DNA of 64,000 nt from Callorhinchus milii (GCF_018977255.1 NW_024704821.1:124001-188000); one strand, 5' to 3'. Shown: positions 5,900 to 60,820, counted from the first letter of the stretch. Notes: a model not told the origin generated them from the sequence alone. Made by a program: numbers and translations.

Positions 5900-6085
5900 A
5901 AAGTTTGTACTTTACATTTGAAGCAGCCATAGCTTGTATGAGGGAACTATGTCAACTGTACCAGGAAGCACCTGTTGTTGCTGCCAAGAAAGTTAGTTCC
6001 AGAAAGAAACGTGTCAATTTATGAGAGTTACAGCTCCTGTTCTATATTTAGTTCGCCATCTGCTGGTGTACTGTAGCTGCAGCAC
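5900..6085 (-). promoter_or_regulatory. Conserved Ets/E-box/CTCF-like module, copy 1
   Basis: AGGAAGCACCTG 5963-5974; CTCF-like CCAGCAGATGGCG on minus at 6066-6054. Confidence 0.6.
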
Positions 6086-6697
6086 GAGTGCAATTGGAGA
6101 CATCTGATTGTAAATTGTTTTTACACCATTTTATATTTAGAATTGTGAATGGCGCTATATAGTACTAAGTTGTTTTGACGTTTTCGTACTTATTAACTTG
6201 CCAAAGGAAAACACGTGCATATGGTAGAACTTCTCAGAATGTAAGACGTTTTAGGTAATTTCTGTGAGTATAAGATGATTATATATAATAATAATCATTG
6301 CATTATTGCTTTGGATATAGCGCTTATCACGCCTACAAAACGCCTCCAAGTGCTTCACAGAATATGTTGTAAACTAGTTGACTGCATATTGTGTAGCCGA
6401 AGCACAGCACCATATTGCTCACGTCAATCTCCCTTTGGATTGAGGGATCAATTTATTATTACCACTATGTTGAAGAACTTATCACAGCTGGAAAAAGATT
6501 CAACATGGACCAACAACCACACTGCAAGGTAACCAGAGGTGTGTTGCTGCGTGGAGTAGGGAAACTTGCACAATGATTGGTTCTGGTGGCAATCGAAACC
6601 AGTTGGTGTCGTTTGCGAGGCGAGTGCTCCGACTATTGAGCTACACGACTGCACTTGTCAGTTTTTGTACAGCTAATCACTGCTCTACGCCACTGTG

Positions 6698-7571
6698 GGG
6701 CTCAGTGCACTGTAATACCCCGCGGAGTCTGTAACTCTCACATGGGATATATTTAATGGGACGGTTCGCTCCGCTTTAGACACATTCGTTGAAAAGCGTT
6801 CCTTTGCGAAGTCCGCGTGATCCGGGAACTTGTTGCTGGTGTCTGTTCTAAGGATATATTCTGGAGGTTTGTTGGGACAGTGACGGTACCAGAACAGATA
6901 GGGATTATTGTCGTTTGTAGCTGTGTAATTACACTGCAGATAAACAGTCTCCCTTCTTTCACTGTTACAGTAGCTTGGAGCTGTGTCACAGAGTCTGCTC
7001 CACAATGTCCTGAAAAACAGAGAGATATCAGCGTTCAACACAACAGCAACAACGGCAATAAAATCGATTTAATAATTGGATTTGTTGTGGCCGCTAATCA
7101 CATGGTTCAGACGTCTGCAAATGCTTCACAGAATATATCTTTGCTTTGTAGTTTGTGGGCGAAACGTGGCAGGTAATTGCGCGCAACATTCTCCACAAAG
7201 AGCATTGCATTGAATGAACGCATTCTTATTGTTATCAAAATTACAATTATTTTTAAGCATTATTTCCCCCGAAATCTGATCCAATTAAAAAATGTGTAGC
7301 TATTTAGCGCTGGGTAAACAGAGGTTTGTATTTGTAGTGTGAGGAAACTCGCTCATGTCACGCCGGGAACCGAACCCATTCCTCACGCTTCCGAGGCCAG
7401 TTCGCTATCCGCTGAGCAACAGGACTACATGAGTCATGCAGCATATTGGATATTTAATGCAATATAACATAGACATTGGAGGATATGTGCAGTAACCAGA
7501 CGGATAGATCTAATGTATGGTTTACCTGACAAGGCAATGATGGCTGCTGCCACATAGATATACATTGTCAT
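6698..7571 (-). pseudogene. TCR V segment V3 (family A), C104S plus -1 frameshift
   Basis: Leader 7571-7526; V exon 7009-6698 is 312 nt versus 313 in paralogs, with a G missing at 6951-6953; YYSALS replaces YYCALS. RSS: CACAGTG 6697-6691, 22-bp spacer, ACAAAAACT 6668-6660. Confidence 0.88.
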
Positions 7572-8811
7572 GTGTATGTATTGGCGCGGGGCGTTGAGAA
7601 AGCGTTGATGGTGTCGTTTGAGAATATTGGCTGGAAGGTAGTAAGATACCATGAGGAGGGCTGCACAGCAAATGACATATAGCAGTTGCTATATACTGTG
7701 AGGGAGCAGGTCTGTGTGTTATATACAAACCTCGTGTCTCTGTCATTTTGCGTCATCTTCCCTGCACTGCCATCTCCCTCCTCCATTGGTTCTTTTCCAT
7801 CAAGGATATGTTTTTGTTCAGCTGGGTGTCTGACAGCTGCTGCGAGTTGAACCCATATTTAGGTTCATCCAAAACATATGCTTGAGTTCTGCCTATGAAT
7901 GCCATCTGTGCATGAAAATAAATGAATAAATAAATGTGGAAAGGAACTTGATTTATGTCCCTGGTTTGTTATGTTTCGCAGTGTACTTGGCGCAGAATGG
8001 CAAGAAACACGACTTGGGGAGGCAAACCTAACTTGAGCTACATTCAGATTATGTAATCAATAATTCACTTTTATTATTAATGTCTAGTATGATTACGCCA
8101 GCTGTCTGCTGGCATGGTTACCCTCCTTCCTTCAGAATCCACAGAGTATCCACAAGTTTGCATCTATAACAACAGCAATGATAGCATTTGATGTATCTCT
8201 CCCTCTTGACATCAAGATCTCGCAAAGGCCTTCACAGTATATAATGGTAACAATCATTATAACTGTTATTGGGTTTCATATACCGCCTAGTCACATCTTA
8301 TAGTAGTCTCAACGGACCTCAGCGAGTATGCAACAATAACAAAGATACATTTTTAAATTGTATTACATTCAAGCGAAATCATTGATTATTTTTCGCGCGA
8401 AATAAGGCAGCCAATTGAGCTAAGCCATGTCCCTTGAGCAATCTTGTGTTGAATGACTAAATTCTCTTAATTATTATACTTTTAAAAACAGGTTTGAGGG
8501 ATTATTCCACGCAGCAATGCAATCTGACAATCGACTGAGCGAGCTTTTTCCTTCTTACTGCTATGTAAAACGAAGGTTGCGTGTGGAGTAGAGAAATTTG
8601 TTTCTTCCTGTCTCGCCTTGGAATTGAGCCCAGGTCCTCTCGTTCAAAAAAAATAAGCTACAAGAAACCACAATCCTGCAGACATAATACGAAAGTGCCG
8701 TCATTAACAAAAAAGTTGAGGCTGATCAGTTATTGTGATGAACAAAAGGGGAATTGCTGGCTGATCTCTGGAGGTTTTTACAAGGCCTCTCTATGTGATT
8801 GACTCACTGTG

Positions 8812-8975
8812 TCTGCCCTTTACCAGTAGGTGCCTTCTTTGCCTGTAATTCTCAGATTACTGCTCCTGTCTCTGCAGTTCATTGCATTCATTTCATCCTT
8901 TCTTTCTGCTGCTCTCCTGGCGTTCCATTTACCAAGTGTTTGAGTGTCTCGTTGGGATACTGTCTGTACCATTGT
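8812..8975 (-). pseudogene. Degenerate 5'-truncated V remnant (family D)
   Basis: Reverse strand reads QWYRQYPNETLKHLVNGTPGEQQKER with stops on both sides. RSS: CACAGTG 8811-8805, 23 bp, decayed nonamer GTAAAAACC 8781-8773. No leader; the 5' part is replaced by the SINE behind the V4 RSS. Confidence 0.85.
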
Positions 8976-8984
8976 TAGGCTTCA

Positions 8985-9144
8985 TTCTGTCCACCAATCG
9001 ACTTGCAACCAGGTTCCTACATATCGACAGGTAAACAGGCGCATGTGGAGTAAGGAAATTTGCCCACCGTTTTGCCTTAACGGGAATCGAACCGAGGCCC
9101 CCTTTTGCGAGCGAGTGCTGTCACTATTCAGTTGCAGTACCTCC
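8985..9144 (-). mobile_element. tRNA-SINE head starting 4 bp behind the V4 nonamer
   Basis: GGAGGTACTGCAACTGAATAG..GGTTCGATTCCC. Equivalent copies start at ~13402, 27253, 41708, 56122 and 58767. Confidence 0.75.
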
Positions 9145-9187
9145 AGGATGTTTTTGTACAGGTGCCTCTTCGACACACAGCACTGTG

Positions 9188-9642
9188 CTCACCGCACACA
9201 AGTAAGCAGCGGTGTCTGTCGCTCGCACGTCTTGGATCGTTAGAGTGCTGTTTTTCTCTTTGCTATTAACCAAAGCTCTTATCCTGTCCTTCACGTTGAT
9301 ATCTCTTGTTCCCAAAACCAAGAACCGGATGGTGCCGTTTCCATACTGTGTGTACCACTGAAAGGTAGGGCTGGGCAAAGTGGTGGTGCACTCCAGAGAT
9401 ACATTTCCATTTTCGGTCGCTGTCACGGCCTGAGGTCTCTGTGTTACGTCGCTTTCAGCCAAAACACCTGGAAAACAGAAATGAACATGCTTAGAAATAA
9501 ATTCGGAACATATCTGCAACGAAAATTTGTAACTATTTAGCAGTAAAACAAGCATTTATGTGTCCAAACTCATACATTACTTACACTTCAAAAATATTGT
9601 TAAACTATAAATCATATATGTTGCTCTGTAATTGTGCTTCAT
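9188..9642 (-). CDS. TCR V segment V4 (family C), apparently functional
   Basis: Leader 9642-9585 (MKHNYRATYMIYSLTIFLK); V exon 9467-9188 (ESDVTQ..LEC..QWYTQ..DTAAYLCAVS). RSS: CACAGTG 9187-9181, 23 bp, ACAAAAACA 9157-9149. Confidence 0.92.
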
Positions 9643-10854
9643 TCTCAACACTCGTTGATTCACGTGAAAATCTTTCGCTGAAATGCAACGGAAAATCATC
9701 CATAGGTAGTGTCTGGTTTATGAACGTTCACTTGAGGAGTTATCTCTGATGCCCGCGTCATTATCTTTTCTCTGGTCATTGCTGGAGGTGTATTGCGACT
9801 CCTCCTATCGTTGATGTACAGATTCCCTTCGCCTCGCTGTGGCAAGCCACAGTAGTGTGTGAAAGATATTGTGTAGAGAGTCCGATTTACAAAGTCTCAA
9901 GGAACGAGACAAACAATAAAAATAATAATCCTTGCATTTGATATAGCGCCTCATCGCGTCTTTTAACTTATTGTTAAACCGGACATCTTTACGCCATTCG
10001 ACTAACAACGGGGTTTCTATTTAATGCTCCGTTAAACAGAATCTTTTGGATTAAGGAAACATTTCGCAAAGCTTAGAATCGTAACCGTGTATCCTGCTTC
10101 CGAGGCGAGTATTCTCACAACCAAACTATCGTTTGCTAAATGCACTTTGGCAAAGAGCACACATCTTGATAATTGGTCGACTTGAAGCAGCAGTATGTGA
10201 ACAACTGTGTGACAAAGGGAATGAAATCAAATGTTTCTCTGTGTTCCTTAGAAATCAGGTTTAGGATTCTTTCGGATATGCGGAATAGGTTTTCCAGTAA
10301 TCGTGGGAGTGATACACCCTAATATTGTGTCGACTGGTCACCTACAATTTGTAATAAACTTTTGTTTCCAATACTCTACGTTTCGAGTATATCTGTTGTT
10401 CAGAAAGGAAAGTGTAAAACAAGCAATGGGAATGCGATTGATGACCTCTGTGAAAACGATTCCAAAAGGGGTACAGAAACCTGCTTTATTGAACCATTAT
10501 TCACACGCTTTCAAGTCGGTGGTTAGTGAACAGAATATCAGCGCACGAGACGACACCCAGTGGTAATACAATACAATTTTTACCCTGAACAAATGATAAT
10601 AATATAAATGTTTGCATTCGATCCTCTGACTTATCATGATGCTAAGGCGTCTGAAATCGTTTCGCACAATATACTGCCGGAATGCATTGCCTGAAAGGGT
10701 GGTGGGAGCCAAATCGACAACATTTTAAGAGGGAAAGATTATACAGCAGAGAGATTGGATTAAGGGCGGCTGCTTATTTGGGGAAAGGTGACACCGAAGA
10801 TGCTTCTTGAGCAAACTAAGCCTTTTGTTGCTCATGCTTTGGAGAAAGCTTTGT

Positions 10855-11030
10855 ATTTTTCAGCTGAAGCAGCAATAGTGTATGAGGGAACCAATGCCAA
10901 CTGTAACAGGAAGCACCTGTTAGTGTTGCCAAGGCGAGCAGCAGAAAGGAACGTGACAAGTTATATCAGTTGCAGCTCATGTTAGATATGTGTTTGGTTC
11001 GCATTCTGCTGGTGAATTGCAGCTACATCA
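10855..11030 (-). promoter_or_regulatory. Ets/E-box/CTCF-like module, copy 2 (CTCF site degenerate)
   Basis: AGGAAGCACCTG 10908-10919; CCAGCAGAATGCG on minus at 11012-11000. Confidence 0.5.
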
Positions 11031-11657
11031 ACCTGTACAATTGGAGACAGTTGATAGCAAATAACTTTCAACCCATTTGGTAATTCCCGTTGTGTATGGC
11101 AGTATTTGAATCTGAGTTCTTGTGGTTGATGTCATCCTGCTGGGTATAACACCACAGAAAGGCACGCGCATGTGGTTGTCGGCATTGCCCAGGGAAGCAA
11201 GACTTTGAGTTTATTATTTCGACGATAACATGATTAAATTTAATTCGATTTATAATCTTTTCATTCGATATTGCACATTGTTACATCTTCCAGACGCCGC
11301 AAAGAGCTTCACGTTATACACTGTAAACGAATTGGTTGCATATTTCGTGAGCGAATTGCAGCAGCAAATTGTTAACTTCAGTGTCCCATTGGGTTGAGTG
11401 ACTAATTTGTCATTATTATTGAAGGAAATATTACACGACCTGCCCGGAATCGAAACAGGTACTTTCGCGCTAACCACTGAGCTACAGGACACCACCTGTC
11501 CTGCAGACATGACATGAACATGCCATTGTTAACAAGGAAATTGAGGGAGACTAAGAGGCGGTGGGTGCTGAGCAGTTATTGTAGTGAACAAGAGTGGAAT
11601 TGCTGACTGATCACTGGGGGTTTATGTGCGGCCTCTCTATGTGATTGTGTCACTGGG

Positions 11658-12107
11658 TCTCCACTGGACACAAGTAGGTGGCGGCGTCTGTCACTTCTGT
11701 GCCTGTGATGCTCAGATGACTGCCCTTCTCTTTATAGTTCATTTTTGCTGTGATCCTCTCCGTCTGCTGCTCTCCTGTCTTTCCTGTTACCAAGTGTTTG
11801 AGAGCCTGGTTCGGGTACTGTCTGTACCATTGTAAGACCTGATTGGTATCTGTTGTGGAACAGCTGATAAAAAACTTGTTCCTTCTCCCCAACAGTCACA
11901 GAGAGTGGCGTCTGGTAGACTTTCTCCTGACCACTGACTCCTGGTAAACGAAAGAAAATCTGTTATTGAAACTCACTCGTTAATTGTGGTCGAATTAAAC
12001 ACAATCTCTCACAATGGGCAAGCGACATTTGTCTGTGAAACATACTCACCCCAAAAGAACACGGCAGCTTTCAGGAGGATGAAGAGTAAAGTATATTCGC
12101 GATTCAT
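11658..12107 (-). pseudogene. TCR V segment V5 (family D), frameshift and mutated heptamer
   Basis: Leader 12107-12050 (MNREYTLLFILLKAAVFFW); V exon 11940-11658 is 283 nt versus 282, with an extra base in the run at 11869-11874; ends YLCPVE. Heptamer CCCAGTG 11657-11651, 23 bp, ACATAAACC 11627-11619. Confidence 0.88.
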
Positions 12108-15012: not shown

Positions 15013-15642
15013 TTGAGCGAAGTATGTAGACAGGAGCGTTGCTGGAAGCTTTTCTGTACCAGTAGAGGTAGGAGGTGTCACTGATTTTCTTTAAGCTGCA
15101 GGATAATTTCACATCATTTCCCTCTTCAACTGTTGTATCGCCTTTCTGTTGTTTCACCGTGTTTTGCAGACTGTTTCCTGTGATTCAAAAGAAAAGATAG
15201 TGGAACAGCAAGTTTGTCTTATGTGGAGCTCTGCAGTGTATTGGTGACAATATTCGCATCACAAGCAAGAGGGTCTATACCAGGACAGGACGAAAGCTTT
15301 CGAAATGATCCTTGCTCCATATGCCTCTGTTTATCAAGCAGTAAATCGGAACACGTTTGTTAGTCGATTGCAGTTTATCTTTTCCAGGGGTAATTAGCCC
15401 TTCAATGTTAATTTAATAAAGAAAGGTAATAACTTGGTTACTCAGTCCATGAACATTGGGTCAAAACTGTTGTCCGCAATCGGCTCGAATACATGAAAAG
15501 GGACTATATCTAATCAAAGGATTATTATAGTTGTAATGTTGTAAAAGGTATAATAAGATATTAAAAAAAAGAAAATATACAAAAGACACTAACTGCAAAG
15601 TAAGCTGAGAATGATTGAGAGCGCAGCACATGTCTCCCACAT
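15013..15642 (-). pseudogene. TCR V segment V7 (family E), 3'-truncated, no RSS
   Basis: Leader 15642-15594 (MWETCAALSIILSLLC, GTTAGT donor); exon from 15177 reads RNSLQNTVKQQKGDTTVEEGNDVKLSCSLKKISDTSYLYWYRKASSNAPVYILRSI and then breaks at ~15012. The 3' half and RSS are deleted relative to V18. Confidence 0.88.
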
Positions 15643-15905: not shown

Positions 15906-17089
15906 CAGCGCCCCGTCCACACAGCACCCCGCCCACTCCACTCACCCCACACAAACACACAGTGCCACACAATCAGGTCATTCAATCCACAACAATGTTG
16001 GGCCACTGTTTTATACAGCTGGCTACCGAGTTTGGCCCACACAATACAATCTAACGACCCATCCAACCCCTCCCCCCCTCCACACCACACACCGCACTCT
16101 CCCACATCCAAAGTTCCAAAAAATAAGGCAACTCAAACTACAACATTTTGTGGGACACTGCTGTACACAATTGGCATCAAACAATACAGTCACTCCACTT
16201 TTCAGAGTATTCTGTGAAGAGCTTTCAGACATCTCAATGACATAATATGGCAGTATAACAATTGCAATCTTTGTTATTATTATCGTTATTATTAAAGTGT
16301 TGAATAAGACATAAGACATAATGAACAATTGTGTTCATTAACCGTGTTTGAGAAACGCTTTTATCAAATACAGCCTTGTCATTTGGTCAATACGCCACAA
16401 AACTCCTCGTTGGTTTTAATGTCGAGTGCAGCGACAGCGTGTTTGTCAACTTAGCACCCAATTTGTGCACAGCACTGTCCCACAAACAGCTATGAATGAA
16501 CGATGAATTTTACAGATGGAAAGTCTTCCCAGACAGCGTTAGACACCTGGATATTTCTCGAGAAATGCAATGGCATTTTTATAGTCCCTTCATTCAAGCC
16601 GCCTGGACCTGGGTTTAATATCTACTCGGTAGGACGAGCTTCACCGACAATAAAGACAGCCAGGCCTGCTCCAGAGCGTCAGCCCAGAAGAGAAGAAAAT
16701 AATCCAATACATATTACATAGTGATCGTTTCTGTCGCATTTCAATGTGTCAGTTGCGGGATGAAATATCAATGTTTTTATTATGATTTAATACACCTATT
16801 AAATAGTTTGATGTTCACGTTTAATGTAGTTGCCTAACCAAACAGTGATGAGGGGAGACGTATGTTTTTTTCACACAACAAATTGTTCCGATCTTGAATG
16901 CGTTGCCTGAAAGGGCGACTGAAGCCGTTACGGTTACAACTTTCAATAGGGAATTGTTATACCGCAGATAAAACTATTTATTAGCGGCTGTTATTTGGGA
17001 TGAAGGCAGAATATTCAACATGCGGCAGAGAAATTGTTTCTTGATCAACCTAAGCCTTGTGTGAATACTTTAGGCCAATATTTGGAAAT

Positions 17090-17235
17090 TTCAGTTGAAG
17101 CAGCAATAGTGTGTATGAGTGAACACTGTCAAATGCAACAGGAAGCACCTGTTACTGCTGCAAAGGAAATTAGTTAAAGAAAGCAACGTGACAAGTTATG
17201 TAAGTTGCAACTCATGTTCTATGTGTTTGTTTGGT
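17090..17235 (-). promoter_or_regulatory. Ets/E-box module, copy 3 (CTCF position falls in the N gap)
   Basis: AGGAAGCACCTG 17140-17151; the sequence breaks into Ns just before the position where other copies carry the CTCF-like motif. Confidence 0.5.
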
Positions 17236-17265
17236 NNNNNNNNNNNNNNNNNNNNNNNNNNNNNN
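17236..17265. other. Assembly gap (30 N)
   Basis: Run of N. Confidence 0.99.
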
Positions 17266-18114
17266 TGTCAATATTAGTATCTCCCAGGCTGCCTTTATTC
17301 GTGAGGCTTGAATCGCCGCGTAGTAGGGCTCTCTAGACAGAATATAATGCGAATTGATTCTCTTTTGTGGGTGAATTGCGTCATCCAATTTCCCACAGTA
17401 ATTTCACAAACCTCCGGGGATTAAGTTATCAAATTGCTATTATTCTTCTTTCTATTATCAAGGCTGAGCTGAAAACCTGCCTCTGTTGGTTATACTTTCA
17501 TATATGATCACAATGTTGTTGGTTCAGGCCCCATGTCGACAATTTGAGCTCACAGACTAGACTGAATTTCAACTCAAAACTATGTGACGGCTGTGTTGTC
17601 CACAAATCCCAGAGACAAGCCATCAATCACTTTATTAATGTTTGTGGGGAAACTACTGCATGATAATTGCTTCTGGTGTTGGCCTACAATCTAAAGTCAC
17701 TTCTTATTAGAAAACGGATACTAAGCTTTGCTGATGCCTGCAAATTGAAAGGCGCTGTACCAAAGGCCAGTAATATTATTATTGTAATTTTATCATTATT
17801 ATGATTATTATTATCATGATTTTTATTAATATTATCATCGTTGTGCACTTCTTCTTAGCATTGCATCCAAGTAAGCGAGCTGCAACTCAAGACGCTAAAT
17901 TACACTAAACAAGGTCAGATTTAATCTCCTACCCAACTTAAACCAAAACAAATGTCCATATTGCCGTTTACAAAATCTAACCCATGTATTACAGGAGTGA
18001 GATCTTCTTCAGGGCGTCTGCTTTCCTGGGAGAAAGATATTAATGTACAAAACACGAAATTGAAGTTGCTTCTTCAGCAAACTAATGCAGTGCTTCAGAC
18101 AAATGTTTGTCAAT

Positions 18115-18290
18115 TTCAGTTGAAGCAGCAAAAGTGTATATGAGTGAAGAATGTCAACTGTAATAGGAAACATCTGTTATTGCTACGAAGGAAGTTAGTT
18201 ACAGAAAGTTACGTGTCAAGTTTATCAGTTGCAGCTCATGATATATGTGTGTATTGTGCGCCTTCTGCTGGTGGATTGCACCTGGAGAAC
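18115..18290 (-). promoter_or_regulatory. Ets/E-box/CTCF-like module, copy 4
   Basis: AGGAAACATCTG 18165-18176; CCAGCAGAAGGCGC on minus at 18271-18258. Confidence 0.55.
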
Positions 18291-19124
18291 TGGTAAAATT
18301 GGAGACTTTTGATAGTAAATTATTTTGGGCCTGTCTTAACTTTCCTGGAGCTATCTCCTCCACTGGAAGTTTATACCATATTCTCATTTGCCGGCTCGTT
18401 CCTCATATTGTCATTAATATTATTTGACTGAGCATTGAGCTGCGATGGAGCATTTTACAAAATAGCCACTATATCTTTACACTTATGTTCCTCCGTTCAC
18501 TTCAGGAGATTATGCCATTGCACTCTGTTCAATAGACATAAAATATCATTTCATCTTGACTACTATTCAGTAACGTAAATAGTACAATTTGTGTTCTTTC
18601 GTTAGTGACTCGCCGAACAGTACACATACGTGTTTAGCGTATGCTTTGCTTCCAAGCATTCCTTGAACCTGATATGACAGCAAAACCTGAACTGAATTGA
18701 TCTGTAATCCAAAGAGCACAAGGGAAAAATTTACAGTATCATGTTTTGGACAGAGATTACAGTGCATTGAATATCTATGTGTTTCTGTACCACAGAAATA
18801 TGACAGTATTTATTATGGGAAGTCTGTAAATGATTCCTGTGGTTTGTCACTGTCAAAAGCACTTTTCCCTGAAGCTGTGCCAGTCTATGTCTGAATCCCT
18901 CCAGCTTGGCCACACTAACCTAAATAACTTTCTTTATTACTGTGCCTCCTGTGAACAACCGTTGTTCCTGTTTCTTGGCCAAGCACCAACATTGTTAAGC
19001 TCAGTGAAAGACACACCCCTTGAAAGGTACTTTAGAGGAGAAGGAGGAAGACATTCAGACACTTGTGCATTTTCCTAAATTAAATTGCATCATTGCTAAT
19101 CTATACGTCAACTGCAATGACCAG

Positions 19125-19375: not shown

Positions 19376-19661
19376 AACAATATATTTGCAACCTGTTATT
19401 TTGGATGTTTTTCTACGTATTTAAGAAACACAAGAAACGTACACGTGCATGGGGCCCCTCTACCCAGACAGCAAGATCACTCAAGTCGTTTCGGTGAAAA
19501 TAATACGAGTTCGTGGAACAAGGAAACATGCCCAACGTTTCCCTCTGCCGGAAATCGAACCCAGATGCTGTCATTTGCGACGCGAGTTCTCCAACCACTC
19601 AGTCACAGGAATCCACTCAGCAGTTTTTGTAGGGGCAGAATCGCTGATCTGTGCCTCTGTG

Positions 19662-22690: not shown

Positions 22691-24009
22691 GTTGGCTGCT
22701 GAGGTGTGGACAGATAATGGACTCTCTTCCTTTGTATATCGCTGTGTTGCTGCTTCAGTGACAAGATGTGAGGAAGCGGCTGATCTGACGCGTTCAGTGG
22801 TTTACTGTGTACAATTGTAGGCGTTTTCCGCAAACCAGAGGATCTTGAACTTGATTTTCTGGCGACTATTAGCCAATGGGTCTGGGTTTTGTATTGTTTG
22901 GGAACATAGAGTAGCGTTTCACCTACAAAGAATGTATTTACAGTATTTGCTGGGAAGTGCTTTGACACGCCTCGAAGAAGTGATAACACGCTCTAACTGT
23001 CATTGCATTAATGTTGTTGATGCTGAACCATGCAGACTAGCCTAAAGGAAAACAGATTTACTTTCTCTCTTCACGGCTAAGGTGAATATGCGCCTCTGAT
23101 GCTGATAATATTTGGAGTCACAATGTTTTTGTCTCGGGACCCACGTCGACACTTTGAGCTCACACTCCAGACATACAGTCAAAGTCAACACTGTATGAGG
23201 CCTGAATTGTCAGTAACACCCAGATAAGTGCCATCGCCGAATTTATTATATTTATGTGGAATCACTGTGCGCAAATGCCCTAGTTTGCTTGCCTATAAAT
23301 TGCAGTAACGTATTTTTCAGCAGCTGACATTAACCTCTTTGAAAAACCTTCAACATGAAAGACGCTATATGAAAGGCAACGATTATTATATTTTATCGCT
23401 GTCCAGATCTGTGTTGATTTACGTCGAAGACATAGCAACAATATAAGATAGTTCTTCAATTCCTATATCAAACTAAATTAGGTCAGTGTTAATCTTCTTC
23501 CCAAATTAATACAAAACAAATCATTATAATGCGTGAAAATGTATTCATGTATTGGCCTACAGCATACTATGAATACTTTTTTACAGAAACGAATATTAAA
23601 TGCTTGGCCACAGCCTCCAACTTAAAAGACGCTGTATCAGGTGCAAGTATTATGATTATTATTATTATAATATTATTATTATAATTATTATTATCTTTAC
23701 TATTACTGTTATAATTATTATAATTATTGTGATTCTTATCGTTTTCCCGTCCTTCTTAGCATTGCATCAAACTAAGGAATCTACAAACTCAGATGTCCAA
23801 ATTAAATTAAACAAAGTGAATTTTAATCTTCTTCTGAAATTAAACAAAAGCTGATGTCCATATTACCGTTAACAACATCAAACACATTTATTACCGCAGT
23901 GACATCCACTGAAGGGCCACTGCTTATTTGGGAGAAAGATAATAAAATACAAAATATGCAATTGAAATTGCTTCCTGAGCAGCCGAAAGCCATGCTTTAA
24001 ACAAAGTTT

Positions 24010-24190
24010 GTACTTTACATTTGAAGCAGCCATAGCTTGTATGAGGGAACTATGTCAACTGTACCAGGAAGCACCTGTTGTTGCTGCCAAGAAAGTTAGT
24101 TCCAGAAAGAAACGTGTCAATTTATGAGAGTTACAGCTCCTGTTCTATATTTAGTTCGCCATCTGCTGGTGTACTGTAGCTGCAGCACGA
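24010..24190 (-). promoter_or_regulatory. Ets/E-box/CTCF-like module, copy 5
   Basis: AGGAAGCACCTG 24066-24077; CCAGCAGATGGCG on minus at 24169-24157. Confidence 0.6.
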
Positions 24191-24803
24191 GTGCAATTGG
24201 AGACATCTGATTGTAAATTGTTTTTACACCATTTTATATTTAGAATTGTGAATGGCGCTATATAGTACTAAGTTGTTTTGACGTTTTCGTACTTATTAAC
24301 TTGCCAAAGGAAAACACGTGCATATGGTAGAACTTCTCAGAATGTAAGACGTTTTAGGTAATTTCTGTGAGTATAAGATGATTATATATAATAATAATCA
24401 TTGCATTATTGCTTTGGATATAGCGCTTATCACGCCTACAAAACGCCTCCAAGTGCTTCACAGAATATGTTGTAAACTAGTTGACTGCATATTGTGTAGC
24501 CGAAGCACAGCACCATATTGCTCACGTCAATCTCCCTTTGGATTGAGGGATCAATTTATTATTACCACTATGTTGAAGAACTTATCACAGCTGGAAAAAA
24601 GATTCAACACTGGACCAACAACCACACTGCAAGGTAACCAGAGGTGTGTTGCTGCGTGGAGTAGGGAAACTTGCACAATGATTGGTTCTGGTGGCAATCG
24701 AAACCAGTTGGTGTCGTTTGCGAGGCGAGTGCTCCGACTATTGAGCTACACGACTGCACTTGTCAGTTTTTGTACAGCTAAATCACTGCTCTACGCCACT
24801 GTG

Positions 24804-30330: not shown

Positions 30331-31469
30331 GTTTTTACAGCGCTCCGCCCACACAGCGCCCCGCCCCTCCACTCCCCCCACACAAACCACACAGTGCCAC
30401 ACAATCAGGTCACTCAATCCACAACATTGTGTGGGCCACTGTTTTACAATTTGGCTACACGTTTGGCCCACACAATACAATTCTAGGACCCACCACAGCC
30501 TTCACCCCCCACCTACAATTTCCACACACACACAATGCCGCAAAATAAGGCAACTGACACAACTTTGTGTGGGACACTGCTGCACATAATTCCATAAACA
30601 ATGACATAGTGTCACCCACTTTTCAGCGTATTCTTTGAAGAGCTTTGAGACGTCTCAATGACCTAATATTGCAGTGTATCAAATCCAACGTTTGCTTTTA
30701 TTATCGTTATTATTACATGTTGAATGGACATGACCTTACAAATGTTTTTACTATTCGTGTTTCAGAAATGCTTTTAGCCAACAAAGCCTTGTCATTTAGT
30801 CGATACGCCTCAGACCTCCTCAAACAAGTTGGCCTCCAATTTGTATACAACACTTTCCCACAAACAGCTATGAATGAAAGATGAATTTAACCGATGGAAA
30901 GTTTGTCCAGACACCTGTGGAAAACTTGTTCTTTCTCGAGCATTACAATGGAAACACAAAAGTCCCTTCATGCAAGACGCCTGGACCTGGGTTTAATATC
31001 TCCTCGGTAGGACAAGCTTCACCCACAGTACAGACAGCCAGGCCTGCTCTAGAGTGTCAGACCAGAACAGCAGAACACAATCCAATCTGAATTTCACAGT
31101 GAGCACTTCGGTCGCTTTTGAATGTTTCAGTTGCGGGATGACATATCAATGATCTTTTATAATTATATTGTAATAAACGTAATAAATAGCTTAATGTTCA
31201 CGTTTAATGTAGTTGCCTGAACAAACTGTGAGGAGCAGATTTTTTTTTCACACTGCCAGTTGTTCTGATCTTGAATGCATTGCCTGAAAGTGTGGCAGAA
31301 GCCGATACTGTAACAAATGTCAACAGAGAATTGCTGTACCGCAGCGAAAACAATTTAAGAGCGGCTGCTAATCGAGAATAAAGGCAATAATTAAAATAGG
31401 TGAGATAGAAATTGTTTCATGAGCAACCTAGGCCTTATGTTAATACTTTAGGCAAATATTTGTAAATTT

Positions 31470-31645
31470 CTGTTGAAGCAGCAATAGTGTGTATGAGTGA
31501 AATATGTCAACTGCAACAGGAAGCACCTGTTACTGCTGCAAAGGAAGGTAGTTACAGAAAGGAGCGTGACGTGTTATGTGAGTTGCAGCTCATGTTATTT
31601 GTGTTTGTTTAGTGCGCCATCTGCTGGTGGATTGTAGCTACAACA
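31470..31645 (-). promoter_or_regulatory. Ets/E-box/CTCF-like module, copy 6 (best CTCF match)
   Basis: AGGAAGCACCTG 31518-31529; CCAGCAGATGGCGC on minus at 31627-31614, matching CCASYAGRKGGCRS. Confidence 0.65.
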
Positions 31646-32114
31646 CGTACACAATTGGAGAGGTTTCATAGCATAATTATTTTGGGCCCGTCTTACCTTT
31701 CCTTGGTGCTATCTTCTCCATAGGAAGTTTATGCATTAGTCTAATTTCCCTGCTCGTCCCACATATTTTATCTTCCTCTCTAGAACATTCGGACATTCGG
31801 TGTCATTCACGTTCTTTTACATTGACGTGTCTCTCTGCTAACACTTGCTGTGCCACTTGCTCCTCCATTTCTATTCAATTCCTTGTCCTATTATTTCATC
31901 GATTATATCATTTGACTGAACAATTAGCTGACTTGGAGCATTTTGCACCAGAGTGACAGCATATTGATATTTATTCAAGTCGGTTCACGTCAGGAGGACG
32001 TCGCAATGCAAATGTGCTCACTAGTCTTTAAATGAAATTTAATGTTCATACTTCTTTAACTTCAATACACTAAATTGTTTCGTTTCTTCAGTGACTCGCC
32101 AAGAACGCTCCCAT

Positions 32115-35419: not shown

Positions 35420-36389
35420 GTTGGCTGCTTAGGTGTGGACAGATAATGGGATCTCTTCCTTTGTATATCGCTGTGTTGCTGCTTCAGTGACCATTGTGAG
35501 AAGCGGCTGATCTGACGGGTTCAGTGGTTTACTGTCTCCAATTGTAGGCGTTTCCCACTAACCAGAGGATCTTGAACTCGATCTTCTCCGATTGAAGCGA
35601 ATGGGTCTGGGTTGGATGGGAATATTGCCGCACGTATCACACAACAACAATTCATTTTACTGTTTAATGAGTGAACCGATTTGAAGTGAATCGTTGAGCC
35701 ATGCAGCAGAGCCTAAAGGAATAAGGTTCAGTTTCTGTCATCAAGGCTGAGTAACAACTTTTCCGCTTTTGATGTCACTTTCTCTAATGAGGATCTTGAA
35801 CTTGATCTGCCGCGGATTGGAGGCTAGTAGGTCTGGGCGAGGTTGCGAGGAGTGCGTTTCACCCACTAACAATTTGCTTTACTGTTCATTTGTGAAGCGC
35901 TTCAGGACGCCTTCGAGACGCAGTATGGATGTATATCAAATGATTAAATGGCATTTTTATTTTCAATACTGTTCTGAATGCATTCATTTGGTTGATCTTG
36001 AACAATGCAGCCTAGCTTTAAAAAAGGTTTACTTTCTATCAAGGCTGAGTTGAAAACCGGCATCTGTTATTGGTACTTTCTCCTATGTGTCTGAATGTTA
36101 TTGGTTCTGGACCCAGATCGACAGTTTGAGCTCCCAGTGTATCAGAGATTGCGTTTCAATTCTTACATTAAGTTAAACGAGGTCAGTTGTAATCTCGTTT
36201 TCAAATTAAACAAACATAAATGACCATATACCATAACAAAATTTATCACATTTTTTATCTCAGTGTGAACCACATGAGGGCGAAAGCTTCTGGTAGAGAA
36301 AGACAACACATCTAAAAAGTGACACAAATACTGTTCTTTGAGTAATCTAAATTTTGTGCCAATCATGATTTAGACAAGGTTTTTGCACG

Positions 36390-36545
36390 TCAGCTGAAGC
36401 AGCAATATGTATGTCAGGAAACTATGTCAACTGCAACAGGAAGCACCTGTCAGTGACATAAAGGAACGTGAAAAGGTATGTCAGTCGCAGCTCATGTTAT
36501 ATTATTTTTAGTGTGACATCTGCTGGTGGATTGCAGCTACAGCAT
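36390..36545 (-). promoter_or_regulatory. Ets/E-box/CTCF-like module, copy 7
   Basis: AGGAAGCACCTG 36438-36449; CCAGCAGATGTCAC on minus at 36526-36513, with one core mismatch. Confidence 0.5.
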
Positions 36546-36938
36546 GTGTACATTTGGAGACAGTTGATTGCAAATTATTTTCGGCCCGTCTTAACTTTCC
36601 CGCTATGAATGTCGCTACGTAGATGCAAGTTAATGTTTCTTATTGTTTCCTACTTGTTCAAATAGCAGAGAAGGACAATTCCAGTGTTGGTCTACCCGGA
36701 TTGCAAAATATATGAAGATATTTCTGTGAAAATAACATGAACGTATTTAGCAATAATAATCGTTGCATTTATTATAGTGCCAAACCACATCGTCGAAAAG
36801 CCTCAAAGCGCTTTGCCGTGAATGGAACACACGTATCTCGCTTGCTTGCTGCTTGCGAGGTGTGTGCTATAACCACTGAGCTACAGGACTCCACATGGCA
36901 GTTTTTGTAGGGCGGAGCCGCTGATCTGTGCCTCTGTG

Positions 36939-44990: not shown

Positions 44991-46049
44991 CATTCAGAGC
45001 TCCGCCCCCACAGCGTCCCGCCCCATCCACTCCCCTCACGCAAACACACACAGTGCCACACAATCAGGTCACTCAATCCACAACAATATGTGGGCCACGA
45101 GTTTGCAAAGTTTGCTACCAAGTTTCGCCCACACAATACAATCTAACAACCCAAGCAACCCCTTCCACACTCCACCCCACACCCCACACTCTCCCACACC
45201 CACAGTGCCGCAAAGTAAAGCAACTCAAACCACAACATTTTGTGGCATATTGCTGTACACAATTGGCATCAAACAATATAGTCACTCGACTTTTCAGCGT
45301 ATTCTTTGAAGAGCTTTCAGACATCTCAATGACATAATATGGCAGTATATCAAATACAATGTTTGTCATTATTATCGTTATTATTACTGTGTTGAATAAG
45401 AAATGCCCTTACAATTGTGTTCATTAACCGTGCTAGAGAAATGATTTTATCAAATACAGCCTTGTTATTTGGTCAATACGCCACAAAACTCCTGCGGTTT
45501 AAAACTAGTTATTTCTCGAGCAGTGCAATGGCAGCTTTATAGTCCCTTCATACAAGCCGCCTGGACGTGGGATTAATATCAACTCGGCAGGACGAGATTC
45601 ACCGACAATAAAGACAGCCAGGCCTGCTCTAGAATGTCAGCCCAGAAGAGAAGAAAATAATTCGATACATATTACACAGTGATCTTTTCAGTCGCATTTC
45701 AATGTGTCAGTTGCGTGGTGAAATATCAATGTTTTTATTATGAAGTAATACACCTATTAAATAGCTTAATGTTCACGTTTAATGTAGTTGCCTAACCAAA
45801 CAGTGAGGAGTGAGACGTATATTATTTTCACACAGCAACTTGTTCCGATCTTGAACGCGTTGCCTGAAAGGGCGACTGAAGCCGTTACGGTTACAACTTT
45901 CAAGAGCGAATTGTTTTACCGTAGATAAAACTATTTATTATCGGCTGCTATTTGGGATGAAGGCAATAATATTCAACATGCGGCATAGAAATTGTTTCTT
46001 GATCAACCCAAGCCTTGTGTGAATACTTTAGGCAAGTATTTGGAAATTT

Positions 46050-46225
46050 CAGTTGAAGCAGCAATAGTGTGTATGAGTGAACACTGTCAACTGCAACAGG
46101 AAGCACCTGTTGCTGCTACAAAGGAAGTTAGTTACAGAAAGCAACGTGACAAGTTATGTTAATTGAAGCTCATCTTCCATGTGTTTGTTTAGTGCGCCAT
46201 CTGCTGATGGATTGTAGCTACAGCA
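46050..46225 (-). promoter_or_regulatory. Ets/E-box/CTCF-like module, copy 8
   Basis: AGGAAGCACCTG 46098-46109; TCAGCAGATGGCGC on minus at 46207-46194. Confidence 0.6.
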
Positions 46226-46479
46226 CGTATACATTTGATGGGGTTTCACAGCATAATTGTTTTTGTTTTTGCACTGGAATTTGATATACTAGTCGCATTT
46301 CCCTGCTCGTTACTCCTATTTTCTGTTGTTCCCTGGAACATTCGTGTACAACGTCAGTCACATTCCTCAATTTGACCTTTCTCTGTGCAAACATTTGCTG
46401 CCTCACTTGCACCCCCATTTTAATTCAATTCCTTGCATTTTCAGTTCATCGCCAAAACGCTCCCCTAAGTGGAAAGCGC

Positions 46480-50671: not shown

Positions 50672-50807
50672 NNNNNNNNNNNNNNNNNNNNNNNNNNNNN
50701 NNNNNNNNNNNNNNNNNNNNNNNNNNNNNNNNNNNNNNNNNNNNNNNNNNNNNNNNNNNNNNNNNNNNNNNNNNNNNNNNNNNNNNNNNNNNNNNNNNNN
50801 NNNNNNN
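50672..50807. other. Assembly gap (136 N)
   Basis: Run of N. Confidence 0.99.
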
Positions 50808-52569: not shown

Positions 52570-53500
52570 TGGTAGTACCTATTCTGAGTCAGAATGTTGT
52601 TGGTTCAAGAGACAAGTCGGCACTTTGAGTTCACAGTCTCGACTGAAAGTCAAATAGAGGACTATGTGTGGGGTATGTTGTCCTCAAAACTCAGATGAAA
52701 CCGATCATTGACGTTGTGAATATTCGTGGGGAAATTAATGTTTGAATATTGCTTCATAATTTGGCTCACAATGTGCAGTCAATGCTTTTTACATAAATGC
52801 GATTTAAAGTTTTGGATCCGCCTCCAACGTGAAAAGAGCTGTATCAAAGGCAAGGATTATTGTTATTATTTTTATTGTTATTGATGGCCAAACCTTCTTG
52901 TCATTGCATCAAAATAAGGAATCTGCAAACTAAGATACCTAAACCATGTTAAACAAAGTCAGCTTTAATCTTCTTCTGCATTGAAATTGTTGTTTCGGAT
53001 GTACGTCTACTTATTTAAACAGCACAGATGGACATGCACACGTGGCGAGACTCCCAAGGAAGCAAGAAGTTTGAAGTTATTTATGTGAATATAGCATTAT
53101 TATATTCAATAATGATAAAAATATTCATTGCATTAATTCACTTGGTATAGCGCCATATCTCGTATTCGAGACACTTCAAATCGCTTCACAGAATAGACTG
53201 TACACTAGTTGACTGCATATTGTGTGGGTGAAACGCGGCAGTCAATTGCTCACATCAGTGTCCCACTGGATTGAGTGAACACTTCAGTAATAATATTATT
53301 GTTTTGAAGAAATTATTACCGCTGGGAAATCGATTCGCCAATCGAATAACAACCGGGTTCCTTCTTTTACTGCTCGTTGAACAGAGTTGTTCGTGGAATA
53401 AGGAAACGTGCACAAAGCGAGGCGAATCCTCTCTCTACTGAGCTACAGGACTCCACATGACAGTTTTTGTAGGGAGGAATCGCTGATCTGTGCCTCTGTG

Positions 53501-54352: not shown

Positions 54353-56165
54353 ATGTATTTAATGGCAACGGGCGTTGACAGTGCGTTGATCCTGTAGTTG
54401 GAGAATGTTGGGTGAGAGGAAGTACGATACAGTGATGAGCTGAATAAGAAATCATTCGCAGAAGTTGCCATATGCCGTGAAGGAGCAGGTCTGAGGGTTA
54501 CGTACTAAACTTGTGTCTCTCTCGTTGCTCGTCATCTTCTCTGCTCTGCCATCTCGCTCCTCCATTGGTTCTCTTCCATCACTGACATGTCTCTGTAGGT
54601 CCGGGTGTCTGACACATGGAGCGAGTTACTCCCTCCTTAAACTCCTCCAATGCCTGTACATGAGTTCCACTTAAGTGTTCCCTTGAAGGACTCATCCTGA
54701 TCAGTTAACTTTTCATGTCACGAGGCGGAGACTGGCCAAGAAACTAGACTCGGGGCAGGTAAATCTCTGTTGGGCGACACTCTGATCATGTACTTATTAA
54801 TTGTCTTTTATTACTCAGGTCCACGCTTGTTATGCCAACTATCCGATGGCAGGACAATCCCTCCTCGCCCTCCCCCCCAGTCCCCAATCCCCGCCTTTCA
54901 CAAACAGCAGATTTTCACATCTCTGCTTCTATAGTGACAGTAATCAATGCATTTGATATAGTTCCTGATCACGTTACTGTGACCTCTCATTGCGCTTCTC
55001 AGTTTGTGCATTAAACTGTAGTGACTGTTATGTGGACTAAACGCGGCAGCCCATGTGCACGCAAGTTGTCTCACAAACAGTGCTGGATGTGGTGAGCACA
55101 TTTGAAAAACAAGTCCTGTGAACAACCTCTCAAAAGTTTATCGCTGAAACCGCGACTGTTGCGTGAAATTGGTTCCCGAGTTTCGCCCATAAAATTCACA
55201 GTCACGACACATTATACTGCATTCTCTGCAGTGCTGTGAGGCATCGCGGAGACGAGATGAAGCGCTGTATCAAATGTCAAGATTTATTGTGATATAGATG
55301 GTTAAAACGAGGTCGGATGTTGTATTAAGTGGAAGCCCCTGAGTGTGTGCAGACGGCTGGAAACTTTCTGCCAGTTACTGTGTTGTACGATTTATTTCGC
55401 GGAATGATCCTTCATACATCATCATATAGTTTTGTTAAACTGGTGTCTGACATATGTGGAAACCATTTCCATGCATATGGTTATCTAAACCAACCTTTGG
55501 GTTATCATAAAAGCGCTTGTAATTAACATAACGATTTATCACTTGTACGAGTCGACTGTACGGTCTTCACAGGGTACCGTGTAAAGTGCATCGACAGTGT
55601 ATTTTGTGGGCAACACCTGGCAGCCAAGTGGATACTGCAGCGTCTCTCAAACAATCTTTGATCGAGTGATCCATTTTGTTGATGGATTATTACACCCGAA
55701 AAAGCGATCATTCAAACTACTATCAAACGGGTTCCTATTTCCGGCTCAGTAAACCATTAAACATAATAAGGAACTTTGCATTTAACATAGCGCTTCATCA
55801 CCTATTCGATGACACATAGCATTTGGTAGGTTGTACGGTGAAGTAAATTGACTGTTTATGTTATGGCCGAAATGTCGCAGTCGTTTGCGCGCAGCAGTGT
55901 CCCACAACAGTTGGGGATTGAAATTTTTTCTCTATTTATAGGAGTTATCACCATCGGAAAAGCGATCGGTCAATCAATTAACAACCATATTCCGACTTAC
56001 TGCTGGATATACAGACGCATGTGGAGTAACGAAACTTGGCCAACATTTTGCACTGCCCGATATTGAACCCAATTATTTCGCTTGCGAAGCGAGTGCTCTA
56101 ACCATTGAGTTGCAGTAAAACCAACAAGTTTTTGTACAGGTACCTCTTGGACACACAGCACTGTG

Positions 56166-58811: not shown

Positions 58812-59271
58812 CTCTCCGCACATAAGTAAGTGGCTGTGTCTGATATTCGCACATCTTCGATTGTAAGCGTGCAGTTTTTCTGTTTTCGCTCAGCCAAAGC
58901 TCTTATCCTGTCCTTCGTATTTACGTCGGTTTTTCCCAAAACCAAGAACCGAATGGAGCCGTTTCCATAATGTTTGTACCACTGAAAGAGAGGGTTGGTC
59001 ACAGTAGCGATGCATTCCATTGAAACATTTCCATTTTCATTCACTGTCACGGCCTGAGGTGTCTGTGAGACATCACTTGCGGCCAAGACACCTGGAAAGA
59101 AAGTAGAAATAAATATTTTTGGAAACGAATTCGGAAAACATCTGCCACGACAATTTGTAATTATTTATCAGGAAATAAAAGCGTTTGCTTGCACACAAAC
59201 ATTATCTACTCACACCGTAGGAATAGTATTACATTCAAAATCATATATTTTGCATTGTGATTCTGCTTCAT
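58812..59271 (-). CDS. TCR V segment V24 (family C), apparently functional
   Basis: Leader 59271-59214 (MKQNHNAKYMILNVILFLR); V exon 59091-58812. RSS: CACAGTG 58811-58805, 23 bp, ACAAAAACA 58781-58773. Confidence 0.92.
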
Positions 59272-60644
59272 TCTCAACTGCCGTCGATTCACGTCAATAT
59301 CTTCCGTTGAAATGCATCGAGAATTTATCCAAACGTAGCGTCTGGTTGATAAACGTTTCTCCATTTGAGGAGTTGTCTCTTATCCCCGCGTCATTATCTT
59401 GTCTGTGATCTTTGGTGGAGGTGCATTGCGACTCCCCCTAACGTTTACATTCAGATTCACTTCTCCTCGCTGTGGCAAACTATAGTCACGCACCAAAGAG
59501 ACAGTGCAGAGAGACCTGATTACAAAGACTCAAGAAATTATACAAATAATAATAATACTAAGTGCCTTATCAGGTCTTGGACACGTCTCGCATTGTCTGA
59601 GGAATATAGAGTAAAATAATTTGACTGTGCTTTTAGAGTGAACCTCGGCAACCTGATGCACACAGCTGTGCCAGGCATACAGTCCTTGAATGAATGACCA
59701 ATTTACCACTTTTTTACGGTGTTATTCCCCTGTCAAACTGTTCGCCATTCGGCTGATAACCGGGTTCCTATTTACTGGTCGGTTAAACAGAAGCTTGTGC
59801 AGTAAGCAAATTTGCGCAGAATTGCTCAATGCTGTGAATCTCCACTGCATGCGAGGCTAATGCTCTAACCAACAACCCATAGGACTAAGATGTGCTTTGG
59901 CAAAGAGCACAGATCTTGATAATCGGTCGCCTTGCAGGAATACTGTATGAAGAAATTTGTGTTTCAGGAAAAGAGATACCAAAAATCTCTATATTCTGTA
60001 GAAACCAGGTTTAGGATTGATTCGGATATATGGAATAAATTTTTCATTAATCGTGGGAGCAGAACAGTCAGAGAATCCTGAAACACCCGTACGTTATGTC
60101 GACTGATCCCATACAATTTGCAATAAACTTTGATTCCAATAATCTACGTTTCGAGTATATCTGTTGTTCAGAATGGAACGTGTCAACCAAGCAATGGGAT
60201 GCGGTTGGCAACCTTCTGAAAACGTTTAGAAGAGGTGTGCAGGAATATGATTTATTGAACAATTTTCACAGGCTTTCAAGCCCGTGGTGTCTTGTCAGAA
60301 TATCAGCGCCCGAGAGACACCCAGTGGTAAGACACTGCAATGTAAATTTTACCCTGAACCAGGAATAATAATATATATGTTTGCATTTGTTCCTTTGACA
60401 TATGATGCCGGTGATGCGTCTGAAAGCGCTTCCCACAGTATACTGCATGAATATATTGCCTGAAAGTGTGGTGGTAGCCAAATCGACAACATTTCCGGAG
60501 AGAAGCATTATACAGCAGAGAGATCGGATTAAGGGCGACTGGTTATTTGGGAGACAGGCAATAATCTAGAAACAGTGACACAGAAGCTGCTTCTTGAGTA
60601 AATTAAACCTTTTGTTACTTATGCTTTAGAGAGACCTTTGTATG

Positions 60645-60820
60645 TTTCAGCTGAAGCAGCAATAGTGTATGAAGGAACCAATGCCAACTGTAACAGGAAG
60701 CACCTGTTAGTGCCGGCAAGGCGAGCTGCAGAAAGGAAAGTGATAAAGTTGTATAAGTTGCAGCTCATGTTATATGTGTGTTGGGTTCGCCTTCTGCTGG
60801 TGAATTGCAGCTGCATCACC
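60645..60820 (-). promoter_or_regulatory. Ets/E-box/CTCF-like module, copy 9
   Basis: AGGAAGCACCTG 60695-60706; CCAGCAGAAGGCG on minus at 60800-60788. Confidence 0.55.

Follow-up and report, generated by a model that had tools for sequence, protein, structure and literature searches.

A non-coding block of ~290 bp was found to recur nine times in a 64,000-nucleotide stretch of Callorhinchus milii DNA (GCF_018977255.1, NW_024704821.1:124001-188000; the whole stretch is referred to as the window), within an array of variable (V) segments of T-cell receptor (TCR) alpha/delta-like type. On the evidence of its sequence, the block is judged, with a probability of about 0.5, to be a selectively maintained, non-coding lymphoid cis-regulatory module that resembles the PAIR elements (Pax5-activated intergenic repeats) of the mouse immunoglobulin heavy-chain (Igh) locus, and CTCF binding appears plausible in a subset of its copies. 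Searches of the window by tblastn, using four V translations taken from it, returned 28 V-exon matches, all on the minus strand, and a heptamer, 23-bp spacer and nonamer signal (recombination signal sequence, RSS) adjoins most V exons. The V exons were sorted into five families (A-E), and each gene is named by its family letter and coordinate.

A profile built from the aligned copies and searched against the window with nhmmer recovered nine module copies, all on the plus strand (E 1e-65 to 1e-92), as the preliminary description of this DNA had reported; nothing else scored below E = 1 in this search, and no diverged extra copies were found. The portion common to all copies spans ~290 bp and extends to 360-430 bp in some pairs. 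The mean copy spacing is ~7 kb, and each copy is 84-92% identical to the core consensus. The Ets/E-box motif AGGAAGCACCTG has eight exact matches, all on the plus strand (positions 5963, 10908, 17140, 24066, 31518, 36438, 46098, and 60695), with 0.27 expected by chance. The ninth Ets/E-box, at 18165, reads AGGAAACATCTG, and its changes retain the GGAA core and a CANNTG E-box. Allowing up to two mismatches, CCAGCAGATGGCGC has seven matches in the window, all on the minus strand, and the CTCF-like motif lies 75-96 bp from the Ets/E-box in seven copies. The proposal of a ~75-95 bp spacing with an invariably minus-strand CTCF-like motif was thus borne out in these seven copies, but the motif is decayed in c10908 and the corresponding site of c17140 falls within an assembly gap. 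The copies and the associated sites are as follows.

c5963, 5854..6136 (+): between pseudogene C6700 and D3387 (ATG 4252); nhmmer E 8.5e-86; Ets/E-box 5963-5974 (+); CTCF-like site 6051-6069 (-), 15.1 bits.
c10908, 10788..11081 (+): between pseudogene A11662 and B9193 (ATG 9937); nhmmer E 3.9e-86; Ets/E-box 10908-10919 (+); CTCF position 10997-11015 (-), decayed, CCAGCAGAATGCGA, 7.8 bits.
c17140, 17022..17235 (+): upstream of pseudogene E15014; nhmmer model positions 1-211 only; Ets/E-box 17140-17151 (+); CTCF position within the N run 17236-17265.
Assembly gap, 17236..17265: between c17140 and the left flank of c18170.
c18170, 18055..18341 (+): downstream of C19664; nhmmer E 1.2e-82; variant Ets/E-box AGGAAACATCTG 18165 (+); CTCF-like site 18256-18274 (-), 17.7 bits.
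c24066, 23957..24239 (+): between C24806 and D21525; core 100% identical to c5963; Ets/E-box 24066 (+); CTCF-like site 24154-24172 (-), 15.1 bits.
c31518, 31401..31698 (+): between pseudogenes C33061 and E29365; nhmmer E 9.7e-92, the best-preserved copy; Ets/E-box 31518 (+); CTCF-like site 31612-31630 (-), CCACCAGCAGATGGCGCAC, 20.3 bits, the top match of the window.
c36438, 36319..36596 (+): between pseudogene C36941 and D34645; nhmmer E 5.3e-73; Ets/E-box 36438 (+); CTCF-like site 36511-36529 (-), 15.5 bits, G-to-T at a critical G.
c46098, 45980..46265 (+): between C47386 and pseudogene E43921; nhmmer E 1.3e-86; Ets/E-box 46098 (+); CTCF-like site 46192-46210 (-), 15.4 bits, first C of CCA changed to T.
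c60695, 60575..60870 (+): between A61463 and B58814 (ATG 59271); nhmmer E 2e-84; Ets/E-box 60695 (+); CTCF-like site 60785-60803 (-), 14.9 bits.
'Empty' site, 52978..52989: intergenic stretch from C53503 to D51375, without a module.

The cores of c5963 and c24066 are identical, and these recent twins leave at most eight independent copies. The c5963 core is the most diverged (84% identical to the consensus), and an 18-nt internal deletion in c36438 brings the motif spacing down to 75 bp. The flanks of c18170 are mosaic, the left one resembling that of c5963 and the right one that of c31518. The gap truncates c17140 in mid-module, just short of its CTCF position. To the right of the gap, positions 17448-18054 are homologous to a flank of the D-upstream type (4930-5859) and not to a continuation of the module. 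Since this sequence is the left flank of c18170, the two sides of the gap are not colinear, and the 1-kb tandem pair c17140/c18170 depends on the scaffold join.

The block was found to be more conserved than its surroundings. Core identity is 0.72-0.92 across all pairs of copies, and that of the alignable homologous 500-bp flanks is 0.63-0.90, dropping to 0.63-0.69, with more indels, in the older pairs. Divergence of the inner 175 bp was compared with that of homologous flanks 100-700 bp away in three phylogenetically independent paralogue pairs, giving 8.1% against 14-18% for c10908/c60695, 11.2% against 23-25% for c31518/c46098, and 20.5% against 29-34% for c5963/c36438. The substitution density of the inner core is thus about half that of the flanks (Fisher combined p 2.7e-7 for the three pairs). 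Among the C-family genes that precede modules, and that arose in the same duplications, identity is 0.78-0.86 for the V exons, 0.75-0.86 for the modules, and 0.59-0.70 for the leader introns; the module values come near those of the exons. Copies that lie beside different V families, and whose flanks are unalignable, retain 75-90% identity in the core centre. Judged from these paralogue comparisons, the block is a discrete conserved island, moderately (~2-fold) more conserved than neutral sequence. The CpG observed/expected ratio is 0.37 in the core versus 0.85 in the flanks, with the surviving CpGs in the conserved ACGTG and GGCGC strings, which fits, without being decisive, an old, methylated sequence that keeps only constrained CpGs.

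The core is conserved in a punctate manner: columns that do not vary form runs at recognisable motifs, and variable columns separate these runs. Fitch parsimony steps were counted on the eight independent copies and ranked against comparison windows. The Ets/E-box 12-mer showed 0.17 steps per column (lowest 2-3% of windows), the only changes among copies being those in c18170, and the TTGAAGCAGCAATAG box showed 0.20 (lowest 1%), compared with a mean of 0.74 for the inner core. The CTCF 14- and 19-mers showed 0.57 and 0.53 steps per column, respectively (14th-28th percentile). The CACCAGCAG half of the CTCF motif (CCAGCAG) hardly varies; in the GGCGC half, high-information positions are substituted in c10908 (GG to TG) and c36438 (GG to GT), and in c46098 the first C of the CCA triplet has become T. 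The expectation that motif columns evolve more slowly than the rest therefore held for the Ets/E-box and was not clearly borne out for the CTCF motif. The Ets/E-box deserves its earlier designation as one of the two best-kept parts of the block; the TTGAAGCAGCAATAG box, which went unmentioned there, is equally invariant, and the conservation of the CTCF motif is average by the standard of the core. Three further core strings, AACAATG (SOX/TCF), CAACTG (Myb), and GGGAA (Ikaros), are suggestive leads.

A scan of both strands of the window with the CTCF matrix (JASPAR MA0139.1; the scores are approximate, with a maximum possible of 28.7 bits) returned the seven module CTCF-like sites as the seven best matches (14.9-20.3 bits), where 0.33 matches at that level are expected per 64 kb under a first-order Markov model of the window. 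The resemblance to the CTCF consensus that had been noted earlier was thus upheld. All of these sites, which match the CTCF core motif CCASYAGRKGGCRS, lie on the V-sense strand. By matrix score, c31518 and c18170 appear to have a strong CTCF-like motif and five copies a moderate one, and one copy has lost it. The same matrix, together with the CTCF orientation code at domain boundaries, holds in little skate (PMC10115646), which makes its use in a chimaera reasonable. The uniform orientation had been taken as support for an architectural role; it is, however, the automatic outcome of tandem duplication of same-strand V cassettes and does not constitute independent evidence. Of the composite architectural element that was initially proposed, the conserved island with its Ets/E-box and the strongest CTCF matches in the window stand, whereas the conservation of the CTCF motif is unexceptional and its orientation inherited.

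Two other groups of CTCF-like matches were observed. A 13.2-bit match, ACACAAGTAGGTGGCGGCG, occurs at 11668-11686, 39956-39974, and 61469-61487 (+) in A-family V exons, on the strand opposite to the genes; it lies inside the codons of framework region 3 for ..AATYLCA and is probably a coding-sequence by-product. A weak CTCF-like string, ACCACTGGGTGTC (9-12 bits), at 10548, 14942, 43249, and 60312 (-), lies upstream of B genes with or without a module, ~1.04 kb from the leader ATG in three of the four B genes and ~0.6 kb for B9193. It was considered as a second CTCF class and set aside, as two critical positions mismatch the CTCF core.

Leader exons were located by an ATG, a hydrophobic peptide, and a GT donor. 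The distance from the Ets/E-box to the next leader ATG is 971 bp (B9193), 1019 bp (D34645), 1424 bp (B58814), 1432 bp (E43921), 1477 bp (E29365), 1492 bp (E15014), 1677 bp (D21525), and 1711 bp (D3387). The interval of 1.0-1.5 kb previously given for eight copies thus fits six of them, and the remaining two lie farther away. The placement of a V-gene promoter, a few hundred base pairs from the ATG, was not observed for any of these copies, the nearest being at 971 bp and the others at 1.0-1.7 kb. Equally, modules lie downstream of a V exon of the A or C family, at a distance of 345-1363 bp, and, because the V-V intergenic stretches measure just 2-3 kb, "upstream of" one gene and "downstream of" another are inseparable. 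The preceding V exon belongs to the C family in six cases and to the A family in two, and the next V gene to the D family in three, the E family in three (all three being pseudogenes), and the B family in two; other A, B, and C genes have no module. The nine copies reduce to three positional classes.

The module is proposed to be part of an ancestral V-V intergenic segment that was copied along with the V cassettes. Its most constrained part would be a ~60-bp cluster comprising the TTGAAGCAGCAATAG box, AACAATG, CAACTG, and an Ets GGAA fused to a CACCTG E-box, which may be bound by E proteins of the E2A/HEB type together with an Ets protein, opening chromatin locally in thymocytes. Where the CTCF-type site is intact it could stall cohesin, favouring contact of the neighbouring V segment with the recombination centre on the J/C side. 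Such a design would be PAIR-like, an enhancer or promoter plus a CTCF site; the ~60-bp cluster would be its essential part and the CTCF site an adjunct, preserved in some copies and in decay in others. Copy number, orientation, anatomy, motif matches, and evolution slower than that of the flanks were observed; the protein-DNA interactions, the cell type, and any effect on V usage are inferred.

The functional claim has to be weighed against processes that could make a duplicated segment look conserved. Concerted evolution, through gene conversion or unequal crossing-over among the copies, is a serious rival, and the possibility that the block is a functionless passenger of segmental duplication, conserved in appearance through such exchange or through a locally low mutation rate, is nevertheless considered unlikely on balance. 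The whole window is a mosaic of duplications, and the module flanks can be typed as L1 or L2 on the left and R1 or R2 on the right, all four combinations being present; their homology is networked among the copies, which is what unequal exchange would produce by reshuffling a single ancestral intergenic segment. In addition, the core tree groups c36438 with c10908 and c60695, whereas the c36438 flanks group with c5963. The flank combinations and this conflict point to exchange at or within the module, and the excess conservation is moderate. The tree conflict may, however, also reflect a fast c5963 lineage, and it would still have to be explained why conversion should stay limited to the same ~175 bp in each lineage. 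The punctate pattern, with its invariant runs at recognisable motifs, and the retention of the core between copies with unalignable flanks further argue against a passive origin. A different emphasis, in which the module is primarily an array of architectural CTCF loop anchors, with an orientation selected for V choice by loop extrusion and an accessory Ets/E-box, is held to be rather unlikely. All seven scorable CTCF-like sites are V-sense and are the sole strong CTCF matches in 64 kb, and the CTCF orientation code found in skate (PMC10115646) is compatible with such a role. In mouse, the V-region CTCF sites of Igh and of Tcrb share one orientation, whereas those of Tcra/Tcrd face both ways (Loguercio et al. 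2018, PMC5859386, which cites Shih et al. 2012), so that the common orientation assumed as known in the preliminary description applies to Igh and not to Tcra/Tcrd. Since the conservation of the CTCF motif is unexceptional (lower than that of the Ets/E-box, with loss in c10908 and mutated critical positions in c36438 and c46098) and the mouse Tcra/Tcrd orientations are mixed, the loop-anchor claim is weakened. It draws no independent support from an orientation inherited via tandem duplication, and the J/C segments and any convergent partner sites lie outside the window.

Rodent SINE B2 (a short interspersed nuclear element, SINE) carries a CTCF motif, and the block might similarly be a dispersed CTCF-carrying transposable element, or a derivative of one, that is found genome-wide and lies in the V array incidentally. 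Its discrete length of ~290-430 bp, its fairly sharp homology boundaries, and a paralogous site cleanly lacking it are what such an element would leave behind, and, in copies of the C-to-E class, an extra segment of 780 bp meets the block at that boundary on its right side. Within the window, however, the block lacks the hallmarks of a transposon, and this origin is regarded as improbable. The nine copies share one orientation, one V-V intergenic context, and networked flank homology, with zero opposite-strand matches and a same-strand depth of exactly eight, whereas the genuine tRNA-derived SINE-like repeats of the window lie on both strands at a depth of up to 13. The module has no tRNA/RNA polymerase III head: an Rfam scan of the window at the gathering threshold found tRNA-like SINE heads elsewhere only, and a permissive Rfam scan of one module copy matched no family at E<=1. 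A search across the copies revealed no common terminal inverted repeats, and the junctions of the empty site showed no convincing target-site duplication. Neither a poly-A nor a microsatellite tail was found. At that site, flanks homologous to 5611-5741 and 6169-6717 abut, and the equivalent of ~5739-6166 (~428 bp) is absent. Because the sister unit (c36438) and the outgroup unit (c5963) among the D-gene units are both filled, and a convincing target-site duplication is lacking, the empty site is read as a deletion, which is more parsimonious than an old insertion at 52978-52989. A 35-base degenerate pattern of the module gave 0 matches in one metagenome scan, which is weak evidence. It is very improbable that the block encodes a product, whether a small exon, a peptide, or a structured non-coding RNA. 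Splice-site-like strings (TTTCAG on the plus strand, CTAAC..TTTGCAG on the minus strand) and an AACAGG/CCTGTT palindrome that could form a hairpin are present, but stop codons interrupt each of the six frames in every copy, RNAalifold gave a covariation term of -0.58 kcal/mol, compensatory pairs being practically absent, and the Rfam result given above offers no structured family.

Several observations weigh against reading the block as a maintained regulatory module. The CTCF motif is not clearly slower than the rest of the core, and its critical positions are mutated in c46098, c36438, and c10908; moreover, the spacing between the Ets/E-box and the CTCF-like motif varies over the 75-96 bp range. 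No association of the module with intact V genes was observed: several of the genes beside it are pseudogenes, and c31518, the copy with the best CTCF match, lies between two of them. One paralogous intergenic stretch (C53503-D51375) has lost the module. The conflict between the core tree and the flanks may reflect gene conversion or rate differences that inflate the apparent conservation, which itself rests on eight related sequences from one window of one species. Finally, some transcription-factor matrix match within 290 bp is not rare when many factors are considered.

The PAIR elements of the distal heavy-chain V (VH) region of mouse Igh were reportedly described by Ebert et al. in 2011. 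They comprise 14 copies of a 470-bp intergenic repeat, mostly beside VH8 genes, and are bound by Pax5, E2A, CTCF, and YY1; only PAIR4 and PAIR6 are strongly active, and PAIR4 together with its V-associated enhancer stimulates V recombination over ~100 kb (Hill et al. 2023, PMC10390877). The block described here is likewise multi-copy (nine, compared with 14), a few hundred base pairs long (~290-430 bp, compared with 470 bp), and interspersed between V genes. Both elements lie inside duplicated V cassettes and seem to recur beside particular V families, the module would combine an E-protein site with a CTCF site as PAIR does, and in both only some copies seem fully intact or active. The two differ in that PAIR belongs to a mammalian B-cell locus and the present block to a holocephalan TCR locus, in the Ets motif found here, and in their spacing (~7 kb here, compared with ~50 kb). 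Binding, transcription of a long non-coding RNA, and an effect on recombination have been shown for PAIR4, whereas the module is known from sequence alone. Membership in the PAIR family cannot be claimed, as that family is defined by binding and by mouse sequence, and sequence homology to mouse PAIR would not be expected over such an evolutionary distance.

The CTCF-binding elements (CBEs) of mammalian V segments are found mostly beside the RSS in proximal VH segments and close to the promoter in V-alpha and V-beta segments. The module resembles them in that a CTCF core motif accompanies V segments and reads, like the mouse Igh and Tcrb sites, in the direction of the presumed D-J-C end; it differs in that ~1.1-1.8 kb separate the motif from the next ATG and 0.4-1.4 kb from the RSS before it, and in that approximately one V segment in three has the motif. 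The muA-muE3 region of the Igh intronic enhancer is an Ets-plus-E-box composite, a classic lymphoid enhancer arrangement. In the module, the Ets core CAGGAAGCA similarly abuts the E-box directly, a resemblance that rests on a short string, and the E-box is CACCTG (E2A/HEB/ZEB type) and not CATGTG. In the literature on TCR locus regulation in elephant shark and chimaera, no description of a V-array regulatory element was found, and a literature search for the AGGAAGCACCTG 12-mer and its complement returned PCR primers only. The earlier remark that the element had not been described is therefore sustained, within the literature searched, for cartilaginous-fish TCR loci, whereas the concept has a precedent in PAIR (PMC10390877). 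The element is of a kind known from mouse and would be new for the lineage and the locus.

The V array itself is indeed one of a cartilaginous fish, as had been surmised: a C-family V exon matches Callorhinchus milii proteins only (best 92% identity). In comparisons with solved structures, A-family V domains match TCR alpha chains almost exclusively, and D-family V domains match a mixture of antibody V domains and TCR alpha. Given deletional joining, the J and C segments should lie beyond the low-coordinate end; none is present within the window, which is a TCR alpha/delta-like V array. The duplications are organised in a higher-order unit, C-M-E-B-A followed by C-M-D (M = module), repeated ~3 times, with A-M-B occurring twice in addition. 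The most recent of them, an 8.6-kb segmental duplication (1389-9962 = 19522-28072; 96.4% identity), carries C, D, C, and B genes and one module. The families and the SINE-like repeats of the window are as follows.

Family A: V exons ending ..YLCAVE.
Family B: V exons ending ..YFCAE / YLCAV.
Family C: V exons ending ..YYSALS.
Family D: V exons ending ..YYCALE.
Family E, 15014-15330, 29300-29640, and 43898-44300 (-): three pseudogenes with stops and frameshifts.
tRNA-derived SINE-like repeats: 2065-2393 (-), 4090-4431 (+), 20205-20528 (-), 22227-22562 (+), 47264-47335 (-), 48636-48865.

The SINE-like repeats give Rfam tRNA matches of 35-44 bits, and ARAGORN identified a tRNA-Ala(TGC) at 4100-4170. 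An RSS-23 (CACATTG..ACAAAAACT at 29300) and a leader that can still be recognised (MLMWETCA..) persist in the family E pseudogenes. Near codon 20, C6700 carries a 1-nt frameshift not found in its twin, C24806, and C33061 is broken at the same place; real pseudogenisation or a homopolymer sequencing error could be the cause. Fragments of A-family V exons (residues ~27-62) at 8894-9001 and 27003-27110 (-), just 3' of the B9193 and B27302 RSS, are relics of a deleted V segment. Near the modules, an extra segment of ~780 bp at 31700-32478 (also at 18342-18631, 46266-46450, and 1-207) adjoins the module's right edge in the C-to-E class only and is no more than ~30 bp away from the module-less site's right breakpoint; its occurrence at 1-207 suggests a further module copy just before the start of the window. 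A repeat of ~100-150 bp (6285-6433, 24388-24536, 32548-32704, 53182-53266, and 56011-56115) is situated between the module and a V RSS, with copies on either strand (depth 8 on the same strand and 3 on the opposite one), and has a transposon-like look. A second assembly gap (50672-50807) interrupts a D-to-A intergenic stretch, a position at which none of the paralogous units carries a module, and a single isolated N is found at position 63121.

To our knowledge, the access of distant V segments to the recombination centre is understood almost solely in mouse and human. It is possible, although doubtful, that a holocephalan TCR alpha/delta V array has its own PAIR-like element, in which E-protein/Ets and CTCF sites are bound in thymocytes and tune V usage. 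If so, repeat-borne enhancer-plus-CTCF modules, and hence V(D)J recombination assisted by loop extrusion, would have been present in the jawed-vertebrate ancestor or would have arisen convergently in cartilaginous fish. If the block is not bound, it would still illustrate neatly how concerted evolution in a tandem gene array can produce a conserved island. If CTCF/cohesin and lymphoid factors do bind it, the oldest living lineage of jawed vertebrates would have its first candidate for a regulatory repeat of a V array, and the nine natural variants within 64 kb, with CTCF sites that are strong, weakened, lost, or deleted, would allow a direct test of how ancient loop-extrusion-guided V(D)J recombination is.

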